From the sequence record NC_031010.1: DNA of 64,000 nucleotides. The stretch is one strand, 5' to 3'. Every line of letters starts with the position of its first letter. Within the stretch, counting starts at the first letter, position 1. The notes under the pieces are model-generated. The model had not been told where the DNA came from, ran no database searches, and saw only the letters and a list, made by a program, of their open reading frames with translations. Below, piece by piece: positions 1,365 to 58,203 of the stretch. A program made the translations under genes and the position numbers.

Positions 1365-1960
1365 TTATCTGACAGTACGGCCGATGTGGGCTGATATCCC
1401 CATCGCGACGGAACGCGAGATTGCTGTTATCGCGAAGCGTAGACCGCAAGCAGACCCGTAAGCCTTGCGCAGCCGGGACACACAAAGCACTATTGCTTCG
1501 GCGGTAGGTGTCCCGTCCGTTCACAACTTATTCGATGAGCGAAACATGATTAGAGCCTTTGTGCAACATGCTCTTGGCCTTCTTCGGAATGTCATCAGCA
1601 ACATGCGCTTCTGGAGGCTCGATACTTATTGGTTATCAGGCTGTGGGACTGTACGCCATAAACCTGTTTCAGGACGCAAGTCCTCAACTCCGGCGCACGT
1701 CGTGAAGGACGAAGGTCAAGCACCAGCCCATTAAGCTGACTCGCTGACAAAAGCAACCTTCACCCACAATTTGAAAATAACTGATGGGATTGAGTTCCCA
1801 GATGCGAAAGAGTAGCTGTGTGCTACTGAGCACCTCCCCGGGACTGCTGAGCAGCGGGGGAATAGGGCCAACAAGAAAGTAATCGGAGGGGATGGCTCGA
1901 GAGACATTAGCCCGCGGGCACTGTTACTCACGACCTGCATCCCCTCCTGTTTAAAGATGA
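1365..1960 (+). ncRNA. candidate large structured ncRNA (~600 nt)
   Basis: No credible ORF; many helices, two cUUCGg loops (1497, 1583), GCAA tetraloop hairpin 1671-1684, 10-bp stem 1885-1894/1938-1947. Confidence 0.55.
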
Positions 1961-1975
1961 GTTAGTATATATGTT

Positions 1976-2051
1976 GCAGGCATAGCTCAGTTGGTAGAGC
2001 ATCTGATTTCCAATCAGAGGGTCGTCAGTTCGAACCTGACTGTCTGCTCCA
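1976..2051 (+). tRNA. tRNA-Gly(UCC)
   Basis: Cloverleaf: acceptor GCAGGCA/TGTCTGC, anticodon loop TTTCCAA, GTTCGAA T-loop, U73, encoded CCA. Confidence 0.95.
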
Positions 2052-2150
2052 GAAATGTAATTACAGGTTTACACTGTATTATGTACAAGACATGTGCGCT
2101 TAGCTAAACTGTTGCAAAAATAACAGGTTATCTCAGTACATATGTGCAAT

Positions 2151-2232
2151 GGTTGTGTCACGTTGGCGTGAGTTGGGTTTACGGCAGGCAAACGGACGTA
2201 AGCTCTTCGTGGTTCAATTCCACAGCACAGCC
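2151..2232 (+). ncRNA. tRNA-like RNA lacking a canonical anticodon arm
   Basis: 8-bp terminal stem GGTTGTGT/GCACAGCC, hairpin CACG-TTGG-CGTG, T-arm GTGG-TTCAATT-CCAC; no CCA. Confidence 0.55.
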
Positions 2233-2255
2233 CTCTTGTTATGTAAAAGAATTCT

Positions 2256-2340
2256 GGCGGGTTACTCAAGCGGCAACGAGAGCAGACTGTAAATCTGTTG
2301 ACTTCGGTCTTCGGTGGTTCGAGTCCACCACACGCCACCA
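2256..2340 (+). tRNA. tRNA-Tyr(GUA)
   Basis: Anticodon arm GCAGA-CTGTAAA-TCTGT, long variable arm, T-arm GGTGG-TTCGAGT-CCACC, CCA; one G-A mismatch in the acceptor stem. Confidence 0.93.
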
Positions 2341-2345
2341 GTTAT

Positions 2346-2420
2346 ACACCCATCGTCTAGCGGTTAGGACCGCTGCCTTTCGAGCAGTTAACCGGGGTTC
2401 AAATCCCCGTGGGTGTACCA
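2346..2420 (+). tRNA. tRNA-Glu(UUC) copy 1
   Basis: Acceptor ACACCCA/TGGGTGT, anticodon loop CTTTCGA, CCA. Confidence 0.92.
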
Positions 2421-2423
2421 AAC

Positions 2424-2499
2424 ATTCCCGTCATCTAGTTGGTAAGGATACGACACTTTCACTGTCGGTACACGAGTTCGAGTCTCGTCGGGAATACCA
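2424..2499 (+). tRNA. tRNA-Glu(UUC) copy 2
   Basis: Acceptor ATTCCCG/CGGGAAT, anticodon arm CGACA-CTTTCAC-TGTCG, CCA. Confidence 0.92.
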
Positions 2500-2622
2500 A
2501 ACACAAGACCGTAACCCTGCGGTGTGGTTAGTCGCCACTACTAGCGGTTACGCGATGCCCACTGCTGCGGGGTGTGTGATAGTGAGGTGGTTGACCCCAC
2601 CAAGCGAGCAGCGAGCAATTTT

Positions 2623-2698
2623 AGGGAAGTAGTTCAATTGGTAGAGCGTCGGTCTCCAAAACCGGTTGTTGGAGGTTCGAGTCCTCTCTTCCCTGCCA
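2623..2698 (+). tRNA. tRNA-Trp(CCA)
   Basis: Acceptor AGGGAAG/CTTCCCT, loop CTCCAAA, CCA. Confidence 0.95.
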
Positions 2699-2704
2699 AA
2701 CAGT

Positions 2705-2781
2705 AGGACTGTAGCTCAGACGGTTAGAGTGCCGCCCTGTCACGGCGGAGGTCGCGGGTTCGAAACCCGTCAGTCCTGCCA
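2705..2781 (+). tRNA. tRNA-Asp(GUC)
   Basis: Acceptor AGGACTG/CAGTCCT, arm CCGCC-CTGTCAC-GGCGG, CCA. Confidence 0.95.
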
Positions 2782-2786
2782 TATCT

Positions 2787-2876
2787 GGAGAATTGGATGA
2801 GTGGCTTAAGTCGCTCCCCTGCTAAGGGAGTGTATCCGAAAGGGTACCGTTGGTTCGAATCCAACATTCTCCGCCA
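2787..2876 (+). tRNA. tRNA-Ser(GCU)
   Basis: Arm CTCCC-CTGCTAA-GGGAG, long variable arm, G73, CCA. Confidence 0.95.
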
Positions 2877-2882
2877 TTACAA

Positions 2883-3036
2883 TGACACCCGCACCTCAAA
2901 ACCCTGGGTATTGCACCCAGAAAAAGAGTGCTGGCAGCCAATAAAGGCATCCGTTAGTAACCGTAGCCTTCGGGCGTAGATGGTGAAGACCGCCAAGTGC
3001 AGCCTTTAGAACTCCGTGGGATTCGGAGGGGTGTCA
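2883..3036 (+). ncRNA. 154-nt structured RNA with tRNA-like acceptor and T-arm top
   Basis: Terminal stem TGACACCC/GGGTGTCA, T-arm-like CTCCG-TGGGATT-CGGAG just before the 3' strand, nested internal helices. Confidence 0.55.
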
Positions 3037-3170
3037 CCTACACACGTTTAGAGAATCATCCTCTCTGGACGACCCCAATGGGCGCGCGGGGTGTTGATGT
3101 CTTAGGCCAGCAGCTTAAGACTAAGTCGTCTGACGTTAATTCGTCAGGGGGCGAGCGGCCACGCAATTTC

Positions 3171-3243
3171 TCAACGGTAAGCAAAACTGTGATGCACTGT
3201 GCTCGCGAACAGAATAGGTGGGTTAGAATCCCATAACCGTTGA
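3171..3243 (+). ncRNA. 73-nt tRNA-like RNA
   Basis: Stem TCAACGGT/ACCGTTGA, T-arm GTGGG-TTAGAAT-CCCAT; no D-arm or standard anticodon loop. Confidence 0.5.
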
Positions 3244-3252
3244 CCCTTTTAT

Positions 3253-3328
3253 TGGTGATTAGTTCAGTCGGTAGAACAGTGGACTGTTAATCCATATGTC
3301 GCAGGTTCGATTCCTGCATCACCAGCCA
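3253..3328 (+). tRNA. tRNA-Asn(GUU)
   Basis: Acceptor TGGTGAT/ATCACCA, loop CTGTTAA, G73, CCA. Confidence 0.95.
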
Positions 3329-3330
3329 CC

Positions 3331-3781
3331 TTTGCTCTGAGATAACTGTGAATGGCATTCCGGAAAAATTTCATTCAACCTAACACGTGCGGTCGTCTCA
3401 GCGCAAAACCCTTTCGGGATAGTGAACCCTGCAAACCGATGTGCTTGCATATCGGGTGTCCGCTATCCCGGACCTAATACAGACGGAAGCCGAATAGGTT
3501 TTTCTAACGCACTTACGCCCAGAGCCATTACGGGCTTCTGTCTGTACCAAATAGGGCATGGAGAGAGGTTGGCGATAATAGGCCGCCCTGTCTGTGTCCG
3601 TCCTTGTTTGTCGGGTAGGTAGTTCGCTTCCCCCCATGGATGCTGGCTGTGTCAGCCTGCCCGACAATCCACATTAGCGCGCTTGCTAATAGGTGTCTGA
3701 ACCTGACCCGTCGGATACTGCCCAGGTAGTTAGAAAGACTTCGACCACACCAGGGTACCCCCTCTCCGTTTTGGAGAGGGG
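3331..3781 (+). ncRNA. candidate structured ncRNA region (~450 nt)
   Basis: Consecutive long helices 3331-3407, 3415-3470, 3478-3546 (followed by CCA), 3608-3667, ending in a 9-bp hairpin 3759-3781. Confidence 0.5.
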
Positions 3782-3800
3782 AATACTCTATTTTATTTCG

Positions 3801-3820
3801 GATAGATATTATCTCTGTGA
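3801..3820 (+). promoter_or_regulatory. putative phage early promoter, RATAGATATTATY-N3-RTGA
   Basis: GATAGATATTATC-TCT-GTGA; the motif recurs 8 times upstream of genes. Confidence 0.7.
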
Positions 3821-3867
3821 ACGAAGATGTATTCACTTTAATCGACTGATCACAGAGGCCAGTAAAT

Positions 3868-4923
3868 ATGAAAAATCGTCACTTCAGTAATACCCGCAAC
3901 GGTGCACCTAAGATTGATGCACTGAGCAGCTTGCAAGGCTTAGGCTACACAGCACTCCAGGCAAAGAATATTCGCATGTGGCTTCCTCGCCAGTTCGGCA
4001 TGGGCGGTCTGGCATTACCTCGGGCTAACTACGAGTTCTGGAAAGCCTACGAGATTGTCAAGGACATGCAGCAGTACCGCAAGACCAATGCCCTCTCTTT
4101 ACAATTCGCGGGCTACGCAAAGGGCCGTACCGTATTCCAGTTCACGGATAACGAGTTCTTGGAGTACCGCAGTCCGACACTGCACTCAACGGTGTGGTCA
4201 CTCGAGTTTGTGCGTCACTTTGGCAACGGCCTGTGGCGCAGCAGCACGGATGCCTTTGAAGGTGGCCCACGCCAGCTTGAGTACATCGGGGATAACCTGC
4301 GTTTGAAGCGCGGTGAGTTGGCAACCCGTATTGTGGAGATGGAAGCCACACAGACGGTATACGACCTTAACGCAGACGGCGGCTATTTACCCCGTAACCT
4401 CGAACGCTATACCGAGAACGCGCGTGAGTCCATCGCTACGCTGTTCACCATGGCCGCGGTGTGTCACAGTAACCTGACGCTGAAAAGCGGCTGGAACCTC
4501 AACCCAGAGCGTCTGTGCTTCACCAAGTACCAGCACTGCGATTCACATCGCTTAGCGTTTGCCATCGGTAAACTCTGTGAGCTTTACCCACAGAAGGAAC
4601 AGTCGATTCGCAGTCACGTGATTCGGATTATGCAGACCCCGAACCACATTCAACTGATGAACGATGACTTTATCCCCGGGGTGTATCATGAAGGTGGAAA
4701 GGTACTCGCGGTTGAGCAACCGAGCTTCATTCTCAGTCCCGCCGGGGGTTTTATTCCGAGTGCCTTACAAGGAAGTCTGCCTGCCTTCTTTGTGAACCTG
4801 CCTTTCGCGTATGGGCCAAGTACCACCATCAACAAGCCGATGTTGTTTGTACCAAGAGAGTTGCGAGACGCCCACACCGAAGAAGAGTGGCTCCTCGGTG
4901 CTCGCCTGTTCTTTAAACTGTAA
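3868..4923 (+). CDS. hypothetical protein (351 aa)
   Basis: Long ORF between the promoter motif and a strong terminator; no family recognised. Confidence 0.85.
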   Translation: MKNRHFSNTRNGAPKIDALSSLQGLGYTALQAKNIRMWLPRQFGMGGLALPRANYEFWKAYEIVKDMQQYRKTNALSLQFAGYAKGRTVFQFTDNEFLEYRSPTLHSTVWSLEFVRHFGNGLWRSSTDAFEGGPRQLEYIGDNLRLKRGELATRIVEMEATQTVYDLNADGGYLPRNLERYTENARESIATLFTMAAVCHSNLTLKSGWNLNPERLCFTKYQHCDSHRLAFAIGKLCELYPQKEQSIRSHVIRIMQTPNHIQLMNDDFIPGVYHEGGKVLAVEQPSFILSPAGGFIPSALQGSLPAFFVNLPFAYGPSTTINKPMLFVPRELRDAHTEEEWLLGARLFFKL

Positions 4924-4929
4924 TACGAG

Positions 4930-4956
4930 AAAGAGCCTGCGGGCTCTTTTTTTTTT
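4930..4956 (+). terminator. intrinsic terminator
   Basis: AAGAGCC-TGCG-GGCTCTT plus long T-run. Confidence 0.85.
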
Positions 4957-5007
4957 CTTTTTTTTACTTCATGCATGATTTCTTATAGAAGGCGATAGGA
5001 GACCTCA

Positions 5008-23411: not shown

Positions 23412-24116
23412 ATGAACGCACAAATCTTTAACGAACGCACGCTCTTTCCCCTGTCAGAGCCGGATAATCAGGGCAAGCAACGCAAGTTTAACATTGAGCC
23501 GAACGTCTTCAATGGTGACTGCGAAGGCTTGAAGTTTTCTTACAGCTGGGGCAAAGGCGAAGGCGTGTACTTCGATGCGCCGTATGGCACCTGCCGTCAG
23601 ATTATCGAAGCGTTCCATGACGCACTGAAAAAGCCTGAGAAGTCTACCCTCTCGTTTGAGAACGGTCGTGGTAACAAAGCTCCGAGCGTTGTGCACGTGG
23701 GTCGCGGTGAAGATCTGGTTCCGTTTATGGCACTGTCCGGCGAAGTCAACGGCCAGAAGCGCACCAAGAAGTTCTTCTTCTACCCGGCGAAAGGTTTCCG
23801 TATCCTGCGTGACGGTCAGCCACTGAGCGATCTGGAAATCCGTGAGCGTTGTGCCCGTTCGTTCATCACTGATTTCGAACTGTTCCTGCAACACCTGATT
23901 GAAGTCTATAAACCGCGTGATTTCAATAACGCCGGTGGCTTCGGTAAAGGTGGTGGCGGTGGTTATCAGCGTGGCGGTCAGTCACAGGGTAACGGCAATC
24001 AGGGCGGTGGCTACCAGAACAACCAAGGTGGTGGCCAGCAAGGCGGTTATCAGAACAACAATAACAACAATCGTCAGGCACCGCCTGACCAGTCGTTTGA
24101 CGACATTATGCTTTAA
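23412..24116 (+). CDS. chmC: ChmC-like nucleus-associated nucleic-acid-binding protein (phiKZ gp67 position)
   Basis: Folded N-domain plus G/Q/N-rich disordered tail; directly upstream of the nvRNAP specificity subunit; assigned by synteny and composition. Confidence 0.65.
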   Translation: MNAQIFNERTLFPLSEPDNQGKQRKFNIEPNVFNGDCEGLKFSYSWGKGEGVYFDAPYGTCRQIIEAFHDALKKPEKSTLSFENGRGNKAPSVVHVGRGEDLVPFMALSGEVNGQKRTKKFFFYPAKGFRILRDGQPLSDLEIRERCARSFITDFELFLQHLIEVYKPRDFNNAGGFGKGGGGGYQRGGQSQGNGNQGGGYQNNQGGGQQGGYQNNNNNNRQAPPDQSFDDIML

Positions 24117-24125
24117 TAAAGCGAT

Positions 24126-24153
24126 GGGTGTGACCTACGGGTCACACCCCTTT
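24126..24153 (+). terminator. hairpin terminator
   Basis: GGGTGTGACC-TACG-GGTCACACCC-CTTT. Confidence 0.75.
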
Positions 24154-56914: not shown

Positions 56915-58186
56915 ATGAACTTTATTCAACAGAAACTCGCGCGTGAGTCCATCGAAGGAACCGGCACCGTCGTTCCAGACGGTCTGGAACTGCCAGCTGA
57001 GTCGGTAGAGGGTATCCTCGCTGACCTGGCCCACGACGACCGCGTAATCGACAGTAACGACGCTGATGCTGCTGTACTGGCTGCTGATGCTGACGAAACT
57101 GATGCGCAGCTGGACGACGTTGACGCTGCTGTCGACGCTGCTGACCCGGATAGCGAAACGCCGGCTGACGAAAAGATGGAAGCCGAAGAAGACATGCCTG
57201 ACTCCGCTGCGGAAGCACTGGACGTTGCGCAGGAGTCTATCCGTCGTCGTTGGGGTCTGGATGCTCGCCAGTCAGTTGCCCGCGAAAGCTACGGCTCGTC
57301 TAACCGCCGTCAGGTTGCTCGTGAATCCCTGTGGACCGATATCAAAGGTTTCCTGCAGCGTATCCTCGAGTGGCTGCAAGAGCAGGGCCGTAAGCTGAAA
57401 GACCGTTGGCTGAAATTCAGCAACGTCGGCAAGTCCATTCAGGGCCGTGCGGCTAAGTACGAAGCGCAGATCCGTGCACTGGGCAAGCAGAACAAAGACA
57501 CCATCTCTGGTCCATTCGTTAAGCAACTGTCTATCAATGGCAAGTTCATCGGTAACGACAGCGCTAAACTGAACGAGCAGCTGGCTGTTTGTACTGGTCT
57601 GGTTGACCTGCTGGCTGAAGTGACTGGCGTGGGTGAAGAGATGGTATCGGCACTGGAAGGCGCAGGCAATCCAGAAACTGCAACCACCGCGAATGCCAAG
57701 AAGCTGATTACGATGATCCGTACCCGTGTGGACGGTGAAGAAGAAATGCTGGGCGGCAACAAAATGGTTATCAAAACCGAAGGCGAAGGCGACGACACCA
57801 CGGCAACTCTGTCGTATGTTGCTTCCGAAGCTGAAGGTGAAGCCTCTGTTCCTACTCCTAATGCCGGTCAGCTGGCCTCTGCTAACACCTTCTACAAGAA
57901 AGTGGGCGTGGAGCTGGAGAAACAGGTTCAGAACTACCGCAAAGTCGACGCTGCCCGTAGCAAGTTCGAAAGCGAACTGCAGAAACTGGTTAAGCGTGTT
58001 GACGGCGTTAAGATCGATGAGAAACCGGGTCTGGCTCGCGCCGTCCGTGTTATCCGTCGTGGCGTAACTGGCATCAATGCGACCGTGTCCTCTTCTGAGC
58101 GCGCGATTGCCATGATCCAGAAAAACCTGACCGCTGGCCTGAACGGCTACATCGCGTCTGGTATTGCTGCACACGCCAAAGGTTAA
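56915..58186 (+). CDS. abundant internal head protein, paralog 2 (SPN3US gp54-like)
   Basis: Same MNFIQQ..ARES start, AQESIRRRW.LD motif and GLNGYI.SGI.A.AKG end as paralog 1. Confidence 0.8.
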   Translation: MNFIQQKLARESIEGTGTVVPDGLELPAESVEGILADLAHDDRVIDSNDADAAVLAADADETDAQLDDVDAAVDAADPDSETPADEKMEAEEDMPDSAAEALDVAQESIRRRWGLDARQSVARESYGSSNRRQVARESLWTDIKGFLQRILEWLQEQGRKLKDRWLKFSNVGKSIQGRAAKYEAQIRALGKQNKDTISGPFVKQLSINGKFIGNDSAKLNEQLAVCTGLVDLLAEVTGVGEEMVSALEGAGNPETATTANAKKLITMIRTRVDGEEEMLGGNKMVIKTEGEGDDTTATLSYVASEAEGEASVPTPNAGQLASANTFYKKVGVELEKQVQNYRKVDAARSKFESELQKLVKRVDGVKIDEKPGLARAVRVIRRGVTGINATVSSSERAIAMIQKNLTAGLNGYIASGIAAHAKG

Positions 58187-58203
58187 TTCCTTTACGTGTC
58201 GGG

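Follow-up and report, generated by a model that had tools for sequence, protein, structure and literature searches.

Conserved structured RNA elements, three of them tRNA-shaped, and a small protein gene in the tRNA island of Erwinia phage vB_EamM_Kwan

The DNA analysed here, a window of 64,000 nucleotides (nt) from sequence record NC_031010.1, is the first 64 kb of the genome of Erwinia phage vB_EamM_Kwan (KX397369; genus Wellingtonvirus), with the same coordinates and 100% identity. Between positions 1365 and 3790 it contains an island of eight tRNA genes separated by long spacers. A reading of the bare sequence (the original prediction) had proposed that this island may form a single transcript, from which RNase P and RNase Z, by cutting at both real tRNAs and tRNA mimics, would free a set of novel RNAs. 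Comparison with related phages shows that the island holds at least eight conserved folded RNA elements, three of them tRNA-shaped and apparently non-decoding, and that none of them belongs to a described RNA family. On balance we lean towards a composite reading of the region, in which a small gene with structured untranslated regions is followed by a tRNA operon containing non-decoding mimics and cis-acting hairpins. The observation behind the original prediction is partly confirmed and its interpretation partly supported, while RNase P/Z release, the stability of the products and a decoy role are best regarded as conjecture.

The evidence for the folded elements comes from the relatives of Kwan. 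The order of TAXI-type binding-protein gene, gap, tRNA array and gp14 homolog recurs in about 15 distinct phages and viral contigs, and this synteny spans the four genera Wellingtonvirus, Erskinevirus, Machinavirus and Seoulvirus, from which homologous islands could be collected as had been suggested. Conserved pairing with compensatory changes is present in every spacer, and the covariation whose absence would have refuted the original prediction is seen as many compensatory pair changes. Where controls were applied, compensatory changes affect 17 of 29 pairs in the element designated L, 15 of 46 in A, 7 of 20 in B and 11 of 19 in D. The controls compared the share of helix cells that pair with the share obtained after sliding the pairing partners, and for L, A and D also included 500 shuffles. 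Helix cells with G.U number 72 compared with 19 for A.C, and this large excess indicates that the + strand RNA is the folding species.

The eight tRNA genes originally recognized are called by both ARAGORN and Rfam, with Rfam scores of 47-73 bits (gathering threshold of RF00005: 29 bits), and all eight encode the CCA end.

1976-2051, + strand: tRNA-Gly(UCC)
2256-2340, + strand: tRNA-Tyr(GUA)
2346-2420, + strand: tRNA-Glu(UUC)
2424-2499, + strand: tRNA-Glu(UUC), second copy
2623-2698, + strand: tRNA-Trp(CCA)
2705-2781, + strand: tRNA-Asp(GUC)
2787-2876, + strand: tRNA-Ser(GCU)
3253-3328, + strand: tRNA-Asn(GUU)

In the whole 246-kb Kwan genome, ARAGORN found no further tRNA besides these eight and no transfer-messenger RNA (tmRNA). 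The bounds first assigned to the island also hold, with a TAXI/NMT1-like gene (534-1364) on the left and a promoter-like site at 3800 on the right. The non-tRNA portion had been underestimated at about 1.4 kb: the 2,426 nt of the island comprise 631 nt of tRNA and 1,795 nt of non-tRNA sequence, distributed over five spacers.

1365-1975: spacer S1
2052-2255: spacer S2
2500-2622: spacer S3
2877-3252: spacer S4
3329-3790: spacer S5

Three elements within these spacers have the anatomy of tRNAs.

2883-3036, tail to 3040, + strand: element B, tRNA-like, 154 nt plus tail
3172-3242, tail to 3246, + strand: element C, tRNA-like RNA of 71 nt
2151-2232, + strand: S2-TL, tRNA-like cloverleaf

A strict scan, which required a 7-bp acceptor and a directly adjoining 5-bp stem with a 7-nt loop carrying U1 and A5, gave exactly two hits in the spacers, elements B and C, where the background rate in the window is about 0.2 per kb per strand. 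The idea that several spacers end in tops resembling an acceptor plus T arm is borne out strictly for 2883-3036 and 3172-3242 and, with a 4-bp T stem, for 2151-2232, but not for S1, S3 and S5.

The termini of element B pair as an acceptor (UGACACC/GGUGUCA) that adjoins the T-loop hairpin CUCCG-UGGGAUU-CGGAG. The interior contains a hairpin P2 in the position of the D arm, a domain P3 closed by UGGC/GCCA with 37-136 variable nt, and a conserved strand (GCAGCCUUUAGAA; GCAGCCUUGAGAA), which results in a cloverleaf-like overall topology with a total length of 120-225 nt across phages. B occurs as a single copy in about 14 phages of the four genera and is annotated in none. In its alignment (A6), 3 of 7 acceptor pairs and all four outer pairs of P2 show compensatory changes, and 93.8% of cells pair compared with 35-52% when slid. 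The Machinavirus acceptor UGGUACC/GGUACCA differs by two double substitutions, and in Erskinevirus pair 7 has changed from C-G to U-A. The 5' end lies 5-6 nt past the CCA of the preceding tRNA. At the 3' end, most Erskinevirus, Machinavirus and Seoulvirus members have C-CCA, and in Erskinevirus and in SPAsTU (Seoulvirus) this encoded CCA stands 2-3 nt before the next tRNA (tRNA-Asp). The tail reads CCUA in Kwan and L017, and CCCU in SNUABM11, L035 and pEa_SNUABM_29. We also considered GCAGCCUUGAGAA as a tag-peptide reading frame and rejected this, as the candidate stop codon falls into a different frame in Kwan and no reading frame is conserved. The 5' part of B (2879-2943; acceptor strand and P2) is 86% identical to 65 nt in the Serratia phages Moabite and Yaphecito, which are otherwise outside the clade.

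In element C the acceptor has 7 bp and the "anticodon" stem 4 bp, the latter bearing an 8-nt loop, GCUCGCGA; the T arm is GUGGG-UUAGAAU-CCCAU and the tail ACCC, the 3' tails found being ACCC, ACCG and ACCU. It scores 20.8 bits with the Rfam tRNA model against the threshold of 29, and is called by ARAGORN only at -ps80. C is 93-99% identical in three other genera compared with 79-92% for ordinary tRNAs, and its 8-nt loop is 100% conserved, with no variation across relatives. In pEa_SNUABM_29 (A7) there are two compensatory pairs in the acceptor and one in the anticodon-like stem. C lies 6-10 nt before the next tRNA and, in pEa_SNUABM_6, 2 nt after the CCA of tRNA-Ser. S2-TL has an 8-bp acceptor, a D-arm-like hairpin, a 9-bp "anticodon" stem with a 13-nt loop and the T arm GUGG-UUCAAUU-CCAC; CCA is absent and ARAGORN calls the element only at a relaxed threshold (-ps90). 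RNAalifold gives a cloverleaf, and compensatory changes are present in L035, in the acceptor and anticodon-like stems. Judging by this predicted anatomy, none of the three elements can decode.

The left part of the island, from 1381 to 1947, has a different character.

1381-1514, + strand: element L, three hairpins (1381-1405, 1445-1469 and 1475-1514) between the TAXI gene and a small open reading frame (ORF)
1546-1734, + strand: small protein gene of 62 amino acids (MIRAFVQHALGLL...GQAPAH), missing from GenBank
1714-1947, + strand: element A, structured RNA of about 235 nt overlapping the ORF stop
1719-1745, + strand: hairpin H1 of element A, with the ORF stop codon in its loop
1785-1800, + strand: hairpin H2 of element A, invariant
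1812-1826, + strand: hairpin H3 of element A, with loop UGUGU and covarying stem
about 1831-1870 (wider bounds about 1829-1875), + strand: H4 of element A, a putative exchangeable cassette
1885-1947, + strand: H5 of element A, 3' domain closed by a 10-bp stem
1966-1973, + strand: motif TATATATG, 3 nt upstream of tRNA-Gly

The original prediction saw no credible protein gene in the island, and in this respect it has to be corrected. An ORF of 55-64 codons is kept at the equivalent place in six lineages (Wellingtonvirus, Erskinevirus, Machinavirus, Caitlin, a Seoulvirus and SPN3US). The encoded proteins share the motif W+L..YW..G and end in QAPxx*, and their N-terminal halves share amino-acid character across lineages at low nucleotide identity. 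The Kwan protein matches PHROG 26199 (E = 1e-4), the ratio of nonsynonymous to synonymous substitution rates (dN/dS) ranges from 0.17 to 0.77 and is below 1 in 8 of 8 pairs, and a Shine-Dalgarno-like AGGTGA stands upstream of the ORF in relatives. From these patterns of sequence conservation we conclude that 1546-1734 is a real small protein gene. Element L (alignment A12, 8 phages), in which 92.6% of cells pair compared with 33-47% with slid partners and none of 500 shuffles reaches the observed value, is probably the structured 5' leader of this gene.

Element A (alignment A9, 11 phages) pairs in 96.4% of cells compared with 30-47% when slid, again with 0 of 500 shuffles. The loop UGUGU of H3 is invariant and is carried by at least five different stems, and in the closing stem of H5 Kwan keeps the pairing with a different sequence. 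H4 exists in three unrelated sequence versions, mosaic across genera: one in Kwan, SNUABM11 and Stratton, the next in L017, Asesino, pSal-SNUABM-04 and SPN3US, and the last in Machina, SNUABM6 and SNUABM43. Since this distribution cuts across genera, it suggests that H4 is exchanged between phages as a recombining cassette. SPN3US carries the small ORF and element A while the tRNA array behind them is absent, which marks the left part as a separate module that did not originate as a tRNA spacer. The motif TATATATG occurs once in the Kwan genome; in Machinavirus and Caitlin it is found at the corresponding position ahead of the following gene, and it could possibly be the start signal of the tRNA operon. 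A scan for sigma-70 promoters gave fewer matches than in shuffled sequences and none at the left end of the island.

The remaining features of the island and its right boundary are as follows.

2058-2084, + strand: conserved 27-mer GTAATTACAGGTTTACACTGTATTATG
2090-2145, + strand: long hairpin in S2, kept in four Wellingtonvirus-group sequences (A8)
2500-2622, + strand: S3, two-domain fold with a long stem (2515-2572) and a hairpin (2586-2602)
3045-3161, + strand: element E in the middle of S4, a hairpin (3045-3071) and a branched fold (3081-3161)
3331-3407, + strand: element D, long irregular hairpin beginning 2 nt after the CCA of tRNA-Asn
3408-3756, + strand: rest of S5, a chain of separate hairpins with the strongest energy signal of the island
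3759-3781, + strand: terminator-like hairpin CCCCUCUCC-GUUUU-GGAGAGGGG, with a T-rich tail at 3790-3799
3800-3819, + strand: phage promoter-like site GGATAGATATTAT-N4-GTG, where the following transcription unit (gp14) begins

Element D is found in all lineages examined and has a conserved apical part, GAAUGGCAUUCCGGAAAAAUUUCAUUC; in its alignment (A10) 94.3% of cells pair compared with 36-51% when slid, with 0 of 500 shuffles. The segments 2500-2622, 3045-3161 and 3408-3781 are less well supported than L, A, B, C, S2-TL and D. The fold of S3 is moderately supported: the sequence is 78-93% identical in L002, L017 and L026, the last of another genus, and 4 of 32 pairs are compensatory (A4). Element E, with 6 of 33 compensatory pairs (A5), is limited to the Wellingtonvirus group. 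It falls in a segment (3039-3171) where Kwan and Wellington are 81% identical compared with about 97-100% across the rest of the island, and its hairpin 3098-3122 has almost entirely different stem sequences in these two phages with the pairing kept. In the remainder of S5 (A11, four sequences), 11 of 95 pairs are compensatory, and the hairpins come and go as modules among the four relatives: those at 3408-3470 and 3554-3599 exist in Kwan and Wellington only, and those at 3479-3545, 3609-3666, 3673-3690, 3692-3719 and 3720-3756 are common within the genus. The hairpin 2090-2145 is weakly supported, most of its positions being invariant or changed on one side. The 27-mer preceding it has one copy in the window and is 89-96% identical in Machinavirus loci, where it stands before tRNA-Tyr. 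Both TATATATG and this 27-mer were considered as general promoter motifs and rejected, as each is unique in the genome.

The stem of the terminator-like hairpin is kept in pEa_SNUABM_11 by compensatory change (CCCUUCUCC/GGAGAAGGG), and its tail is conserved. The site that follows belongs to a recurring motif with consensus AGATAGATATTAT, succeeded by N4 and GTG at most sites, of which the Kwan genome has 22 copies on its + strand and 3 on its - strand. Eight + strand sites lie in the window (3800, 7147, 16066, 16153, 24201, 25589, 29291 and 58254) and 14 beyond it. Those sites that were compared with the annotation precede genes, and some of the sites come after a GC-rich hairpin. AGATAGATATTAT probably represents a class of promoters used by the RNA polymerase that the phage itself encodes. 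With a terminator followed by a recurring promoter motif at 3800, the right-hand boundary of the island is sound.

The original prediction also stated that nearly every spacer folds. In terms of compensatory pairing this is correct for every spacer, but in terms of folding energy it is not. Minimum free energies (MFE) were expressed as z-scores relative to dinucleotide shuffles, with every 150-nt window of the 64 kb as background. The spacer z-scores are -3.3 for S1, -2.1 for S2, -0.9 for S3, -3.25 for S4 and -5.9 for S5. The 150-nt windows outside the island have a mean of -0.77 and a standard deviation of 1.26, with 16% of them below -2, and inside the island 3451-3600 is the only clear outlier (-4.9), followed by the lesser 3001-3150 (-2.7). 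Energy z-scores were therefore rejected as insufficient proof of structure against the measured genome background. Since folding energy fails to single out the island, the case rests on the comparison with relatives.

The array has turned over considerably in this clade. Units of tRNA size have been inserted and deleted at unit boundaries among the relatives; the array of pEa_SNUABM_11, for example, includes extra Leu, Ile, Gln and Met tRNA genes, and the relative L035 carries two degenerate tRNA-like sequences, rejected by ARAGORN, at the exact site of a deletion in Kwan. The L035 sequences lie at about 3861-3946 and 4104-4255 (reverse strand). Further elements of tRNA size with acceptor-like ends, uncalled by ARAGORN, were seen at L008 4439-4528, L009 4659-4748 and L017 5989-6074; the uncalled elements include one of 88 nt after tRNA-Gln with the 3' end UGCUUCCACCA and one of 85 nt, UGAGCG...CGCUCACC. 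GenBank "tRNA-Ile(aat)" genes of 97-120 nt in relatives resemble long or composite tRNA-like elements, and two Rfam tRNA matches of 31 and 39 bits lie at this site in Machina. The loci with such odd annotations are L013 5306-5397 and 5399-5470 and L004 3865-3944 and 4297-4416, and the "tRNA-His" of Stratton at 3865-3944 is Asp(GUC) according to ARAGORN.

The distribution of the elements is narrow. Scans of metagenomes and IMG/VR for elements A, B and C returned the same phage clade alone, and when the Kwan spacers were compared by blastn with 50,697 phage records, a collection that should contain T4-type phages, only SPN3US-like phages and the two Serratia phages matched. Rfam 15 at the gathering threshold found tRNAs only in the 64-kb window, and permissive scans (E <= 10) of the Kwan, Machina and SPAsTU islands added nothing but noise. 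The Rfam comparison called for by the original prediction was consequently negative, in that no family, including GOLLD, ROOL, YrlA and tmRNA, accounts for the tRNA-like tops, and we found no description of the island's RNA elements in the literature. The elements are new RNA families of a known general kind, namely structured and tRNA-like RNAs in a phage tRNA cluster, and they are confined to a small clade.

The similarity of B, C and S2-TL to canonical tRNA (RF00005) lies in a 7-8-bp acceptor that abuts a T-arm hairpin with a 7-nt loop, and in their position within a tRNA array with linkers of tRNA type. B and C conform to the full pattern of 7-bp acceptor, 5-bp T stem and 7-nt T loop and have compensatory changes in their acceptors, and most copies of B encode CCA. 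However, C scores below threshold and B and S2-TL give no RF00005 hit at E <= 10. A 7-nt anticodon loop is missing from all three (8 nt in C, 13 nt in S2-TL and no conserved anticodon-like loop in B), C56 is missing from the T loops of B and C, and G18G19 from C. The tRNA-like domain of tmRNA resembles B in having an acceptor made of paired termini beside a T arm, a large insert and a CCA end, but in B the third pair is A-U or G-C rather than G.U, there is no conserved reading frame, and the length is 120-225 nt.

The nearest precedent, by analogy, appears to be RNA C and RNA D ("species 1 and 2") of phage T4, which mature from tRNA precursors via RNase P. They are likewise small non-tRNA RNAs in or beside a phage tRNA cluster and on the same strand as the tRNAs, but the Kwan spacers have no detectable similarity to them and blastn against the phage collection gives no T4-like phage. 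Kwan is moreover a jumbo phage with a split multisubunit RNA polymerase, and its RNA set is larger and includes a cloverleaf-like RNA of 154 nt. RNA C and RNA D are encoded in the T4 tRNA region and their function is still unknown (PMC9697503). Like the Kwan elements, YrlA (RF02553), the RNA associated with Ro/Rsr, is a non-coding RNA bearing a tRNA-mimicking module. The acceptor of the Kwan mimic is built from the RNA termini, whereas the topology of YrlA is the reverse. YrlA gives no hit in Kwan, and in relatives it scores 23-26 bits where the threshold is 69, with these matches located on tRNA junctions. GOLLD and ROOL are large structured RNAs of unknown function, often found in phages adjoining tRNA genes, but they have no match here (E <= 10), and the Kwan units are separate and 70-235 nt long compared with 500-800 nt. 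Some jumbo phages encode Ro/TROVE proteins (PMC7824862); none appears in the Kwan GenBank annotation, which was checked as annotated and not by a profile search of all proteins.

A bacterial search with the 19-nt hairpin pattern of B returned 84 matches, roughly as many as chance would produce, and in addition one recurring hairpin family. Hairpins CUCCG-UGNNAUU-CGGAG, letter-identical to the type found in B, are present in many bacterial genomes in the shared context ...AGGGAA[hairpin]ACGGGCCCGCCGCUGUAACC..., which we take to be a cobalamin riboswitch, its loop (U1...A5) presumably being a T-loop. The hairpin alone is shared with B under the exact pattern searched, the flanks differ, and the Rfam cobalamin models have no match in B. 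The bacterial hairpins were accordingly rejected as homologs of B and are regarded as a shared T-loop motif.

According to the composite reading towards which we lean, the region would consist of two conserved modules of SPN3US-like jumbo phages, both read from the + strand. In module 1 (1381-1947), the 62-amino-acid gene would be framed by the leader L and the 3' RNA A, the first hairpin of which encloses the stop codon. Module 2 (about 1966-3799) would be a polycistronic tRNA operon of eight decoding tRNAs together with S2-TL, B and C, which are set apart by the same short linkers as the real tRNAs of the array. Host enzymes of tRNA maturation may process the mimics, with RNase P generating the 5' end while the 3' end would be formed by RNase E/Z, exonucleases and the CCA enzyme. 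RNase P is known to cleave non-tRNA substrates with tops resembling an acceptor and T arm (PMC11143913). The released RNAs could then persist as stable tRNA mimics, in the manner of T4 RNA C and RNA D. The other spacer structures (S3, E, the trailer hairpin D and the S5 chain) would be cis elements that punctuate, protect or terminate a precursor ending at the terminator 3759-3781. We also put forward, tentatively and as an unlikely extension, that B, C and S2-TL represent a new class of phage tRNA mimics, namely enlarged cloverleaves that have a genuine acceptor/T-arm top and a CCA end, lack an anticodon, are freed from the tRNA operon by host tRNA enzymes and act in trans, and that module 1, the small ORF between its covarying leader and 3' RNA, is a second, independent and likewise new riboregulatory module shared by SPN3US-like (Chimalliviridae-related) phages. 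If so, the mimics could be baits or inhibitors of defence nucleases, modification enzymes or the CCA enzyme, or cofactors of a phage protein. A role as decoys is possible but not favoured, because normal anticodon loops are missing from the mimics and because relatives can do without any one of them.

Several points weigh against the composite reading. The alignments hold 4-13 sequences, all of them related, and since the structures were predicted on the same alignments that are used to support them, the support looks stronger than it is. In folding energy, most spacers have z-scores that are usual for the Kwan genome. The CCA of B is lost (CCUA) in Kwan and its closest relatives, and together with a deletion junction at the 3' end of B, revealed by comparison with L035, this means that B may be decaying in Kwan. 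B is absent from SPN3US, Caitlin and L026, and S2-TL is missing from pEa_SNUABM_11, so neither of these elements is essential. Finally, none of the 22 AGATAGATATTAT sites lies inside or just upstream of the island, which leaves TATATATG as a guess for the operon promoter.

The original interpretation would make the whole island a single system, one transcript diced at real and mimic tRNAs into trans-acting decoys for anticodon nucleases or into scaffolds. It draws on the existence of three tRNA-shaped, non-decoding RNAs under selection, on the full conservation of the abnormal anticodon-like loop of C, on a conserved tRNA set rich in Tyr, Asp and Asn (plus His in relatives), and on the proposal that phage tRNAs counter anticodon nucleases (PMC10264068). 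We nevertheless consider it unlikely. The occurrence of module 1 in SPN3US without the tRNA array means that it is no part of a tRNA-linked system, about 190 nt of the region are protein-coding, and the elements are individually gained and lost among close relatives. Known anticodon nucleases recognise 7-nt anticodon loops, without which the mimics would make poor decoys, and the Kwan annotation has no genes for tRNA repair or RNA ligase. Covarying RNAs without a known match remain of the one-system idea, whereas the first 600 nt form a separate module, and several spacers look less like released RNAs than like cis hairpins (the tRNA-Asn trailer, the terminator and the lineage-specific insertions). 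At the other extreme, the spacers might be neutral leftovers without a function of their own: tRNA genes in decay, scars of indels and chance hairpins in an array with rapid turnover. The dynamic array with its insertions and deletions of tRNA and tRNA-like units, the degenerate sequences of L035, the Kwan deletion that abuts B, the restriction of two S5 hairpins to Kwan and Wellington, and the mostly ordinary energy z-scores would all fit such a history. But compensatory changes keep the pairing across four genera, so that it is largely refuted for L, A, B, C and D, element C is more conserved than the tRNAs that flank it, and conserved single-stranded motifs and loops (GCAGCCUUGAGAA, UGUGU and GCUCGCGA) argue for selection; we therefore give the neutral explanation little credence.

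We are equally doubtful that 1381-1947 is one non-coding RNA of about 570 nt with an untranslated inner ORF of 62 codons. Covarying RNA does lie on both sides of the ORF and overlaps its last codons, the nucleotide conservation between Kwan and Stratton (88%) continues unchanged across the stop codon, and in some pairs dN/dS is 0.72-0.77, moderately below 1. Against this stand the PHROG match, dN/dS values that are below 1 in every pair and as low as 0.17, and a frame that stays open in six lineages with similar length, start and Shine-Dalgarno-like sequence. It is highly improbable that the structures act as DNA, in the form of cruciforms or single-stranded hairpins at a replication or recombination site. 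The region is near the conventional genome start and is a hot spot of rearrangement and cassette exchange, but the nearly fourfold excess of G.U over A.C in helices means that the + strand alone folds well, and the tRNA-like anatomy, encoded CCA and tRNA-type spacing point to RNA, as does the co-orientation with the tRNAs in a region bounded by a terminator.

The island bears on the question why phages carry tRNA genes and what role extra stable RNAs play, a question that dates from T4 RNA C and RNA D. The jumbo phages concerned, which infect Erwinia and Salmonella, form a small and tractable clade with at least five clearly covarying RNA elements without an Rfam match; one of these, B, is tRNA-shaped, unusually large and, in most copies, ends in an encoded CCA. 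Since single elements are naturally missing from one phage or another, comparisons within the clade are readily made. Should the mimics be processed and stable, they would open a direct approach to tRNA mimicry in phage-host conflict, and they would also bear on how RNA is exported and processed by phages in which transcription and translation are kept apart. The public annotation can also be corrected, with one real small gene missing and two annotated genes probably spurious. The latter are KWAN_4 and the minus-strand KWAN_5, the GenBank genes inside the island. Neither has a Pfam or PHROG match, and stop codons interrupt the KWAN_5 frame in Machinavirus, Caitlin, SPN3US and a Seoulvirus despite conserved DNA, so that we rejected both as genes; the region is mostly without gene annotation in relatives.

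Kwan is a relative of SPN3US and has split multisubunit RNA polymerase genes of the type found in phiKZ/SPN3US-like jumbo phages. SPN3US has been classed with the nucleus-forming Chimalliviridae (10.1101/2023.09.20.558163). Chimallin was not found among eight large hypothetical proteins of the window (Pfam for all eight, PDB sequences for three), so that a nucleus-forming habit of Kwan is suggested by its kinship with SPN3US. The gene to the left of the island (534-1364) encodes a TAXI/NMT1-like periplasmic solute-binding protein (Pfam NMT1_3, E = 5.5e-12) with a signal-like N-terminus, which is unusual in a phage and stands directly upstream of the RNA region in most relatives. The opposite end of the genome has a gene-poor segment of 1.5 kb (KX397369 243186-244677), in which only two short minus-strand ORFs are annotated and which may hold further RNA elements. 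It may be the counterpart of the stretch ahead of the TAXI gene that contains tRNA-Trp and tRNA-Cys in relatives. Within the Kwan genome, the promoter region 3784-3860 is the only island sequence that recurs elsewhere. The most stable 150-nt windows of the 64 kb are 24001-24150 (z = -6.4) and 58051-58200 (z = -5.3), each about 50-200 nt upstream of a promoter-like site (24201 and 58254), and the terminator hairpin after gp14 (4927-4965) is followed by an exceptionally long T run (TTTTTTTTTTCTTTTTTTT).

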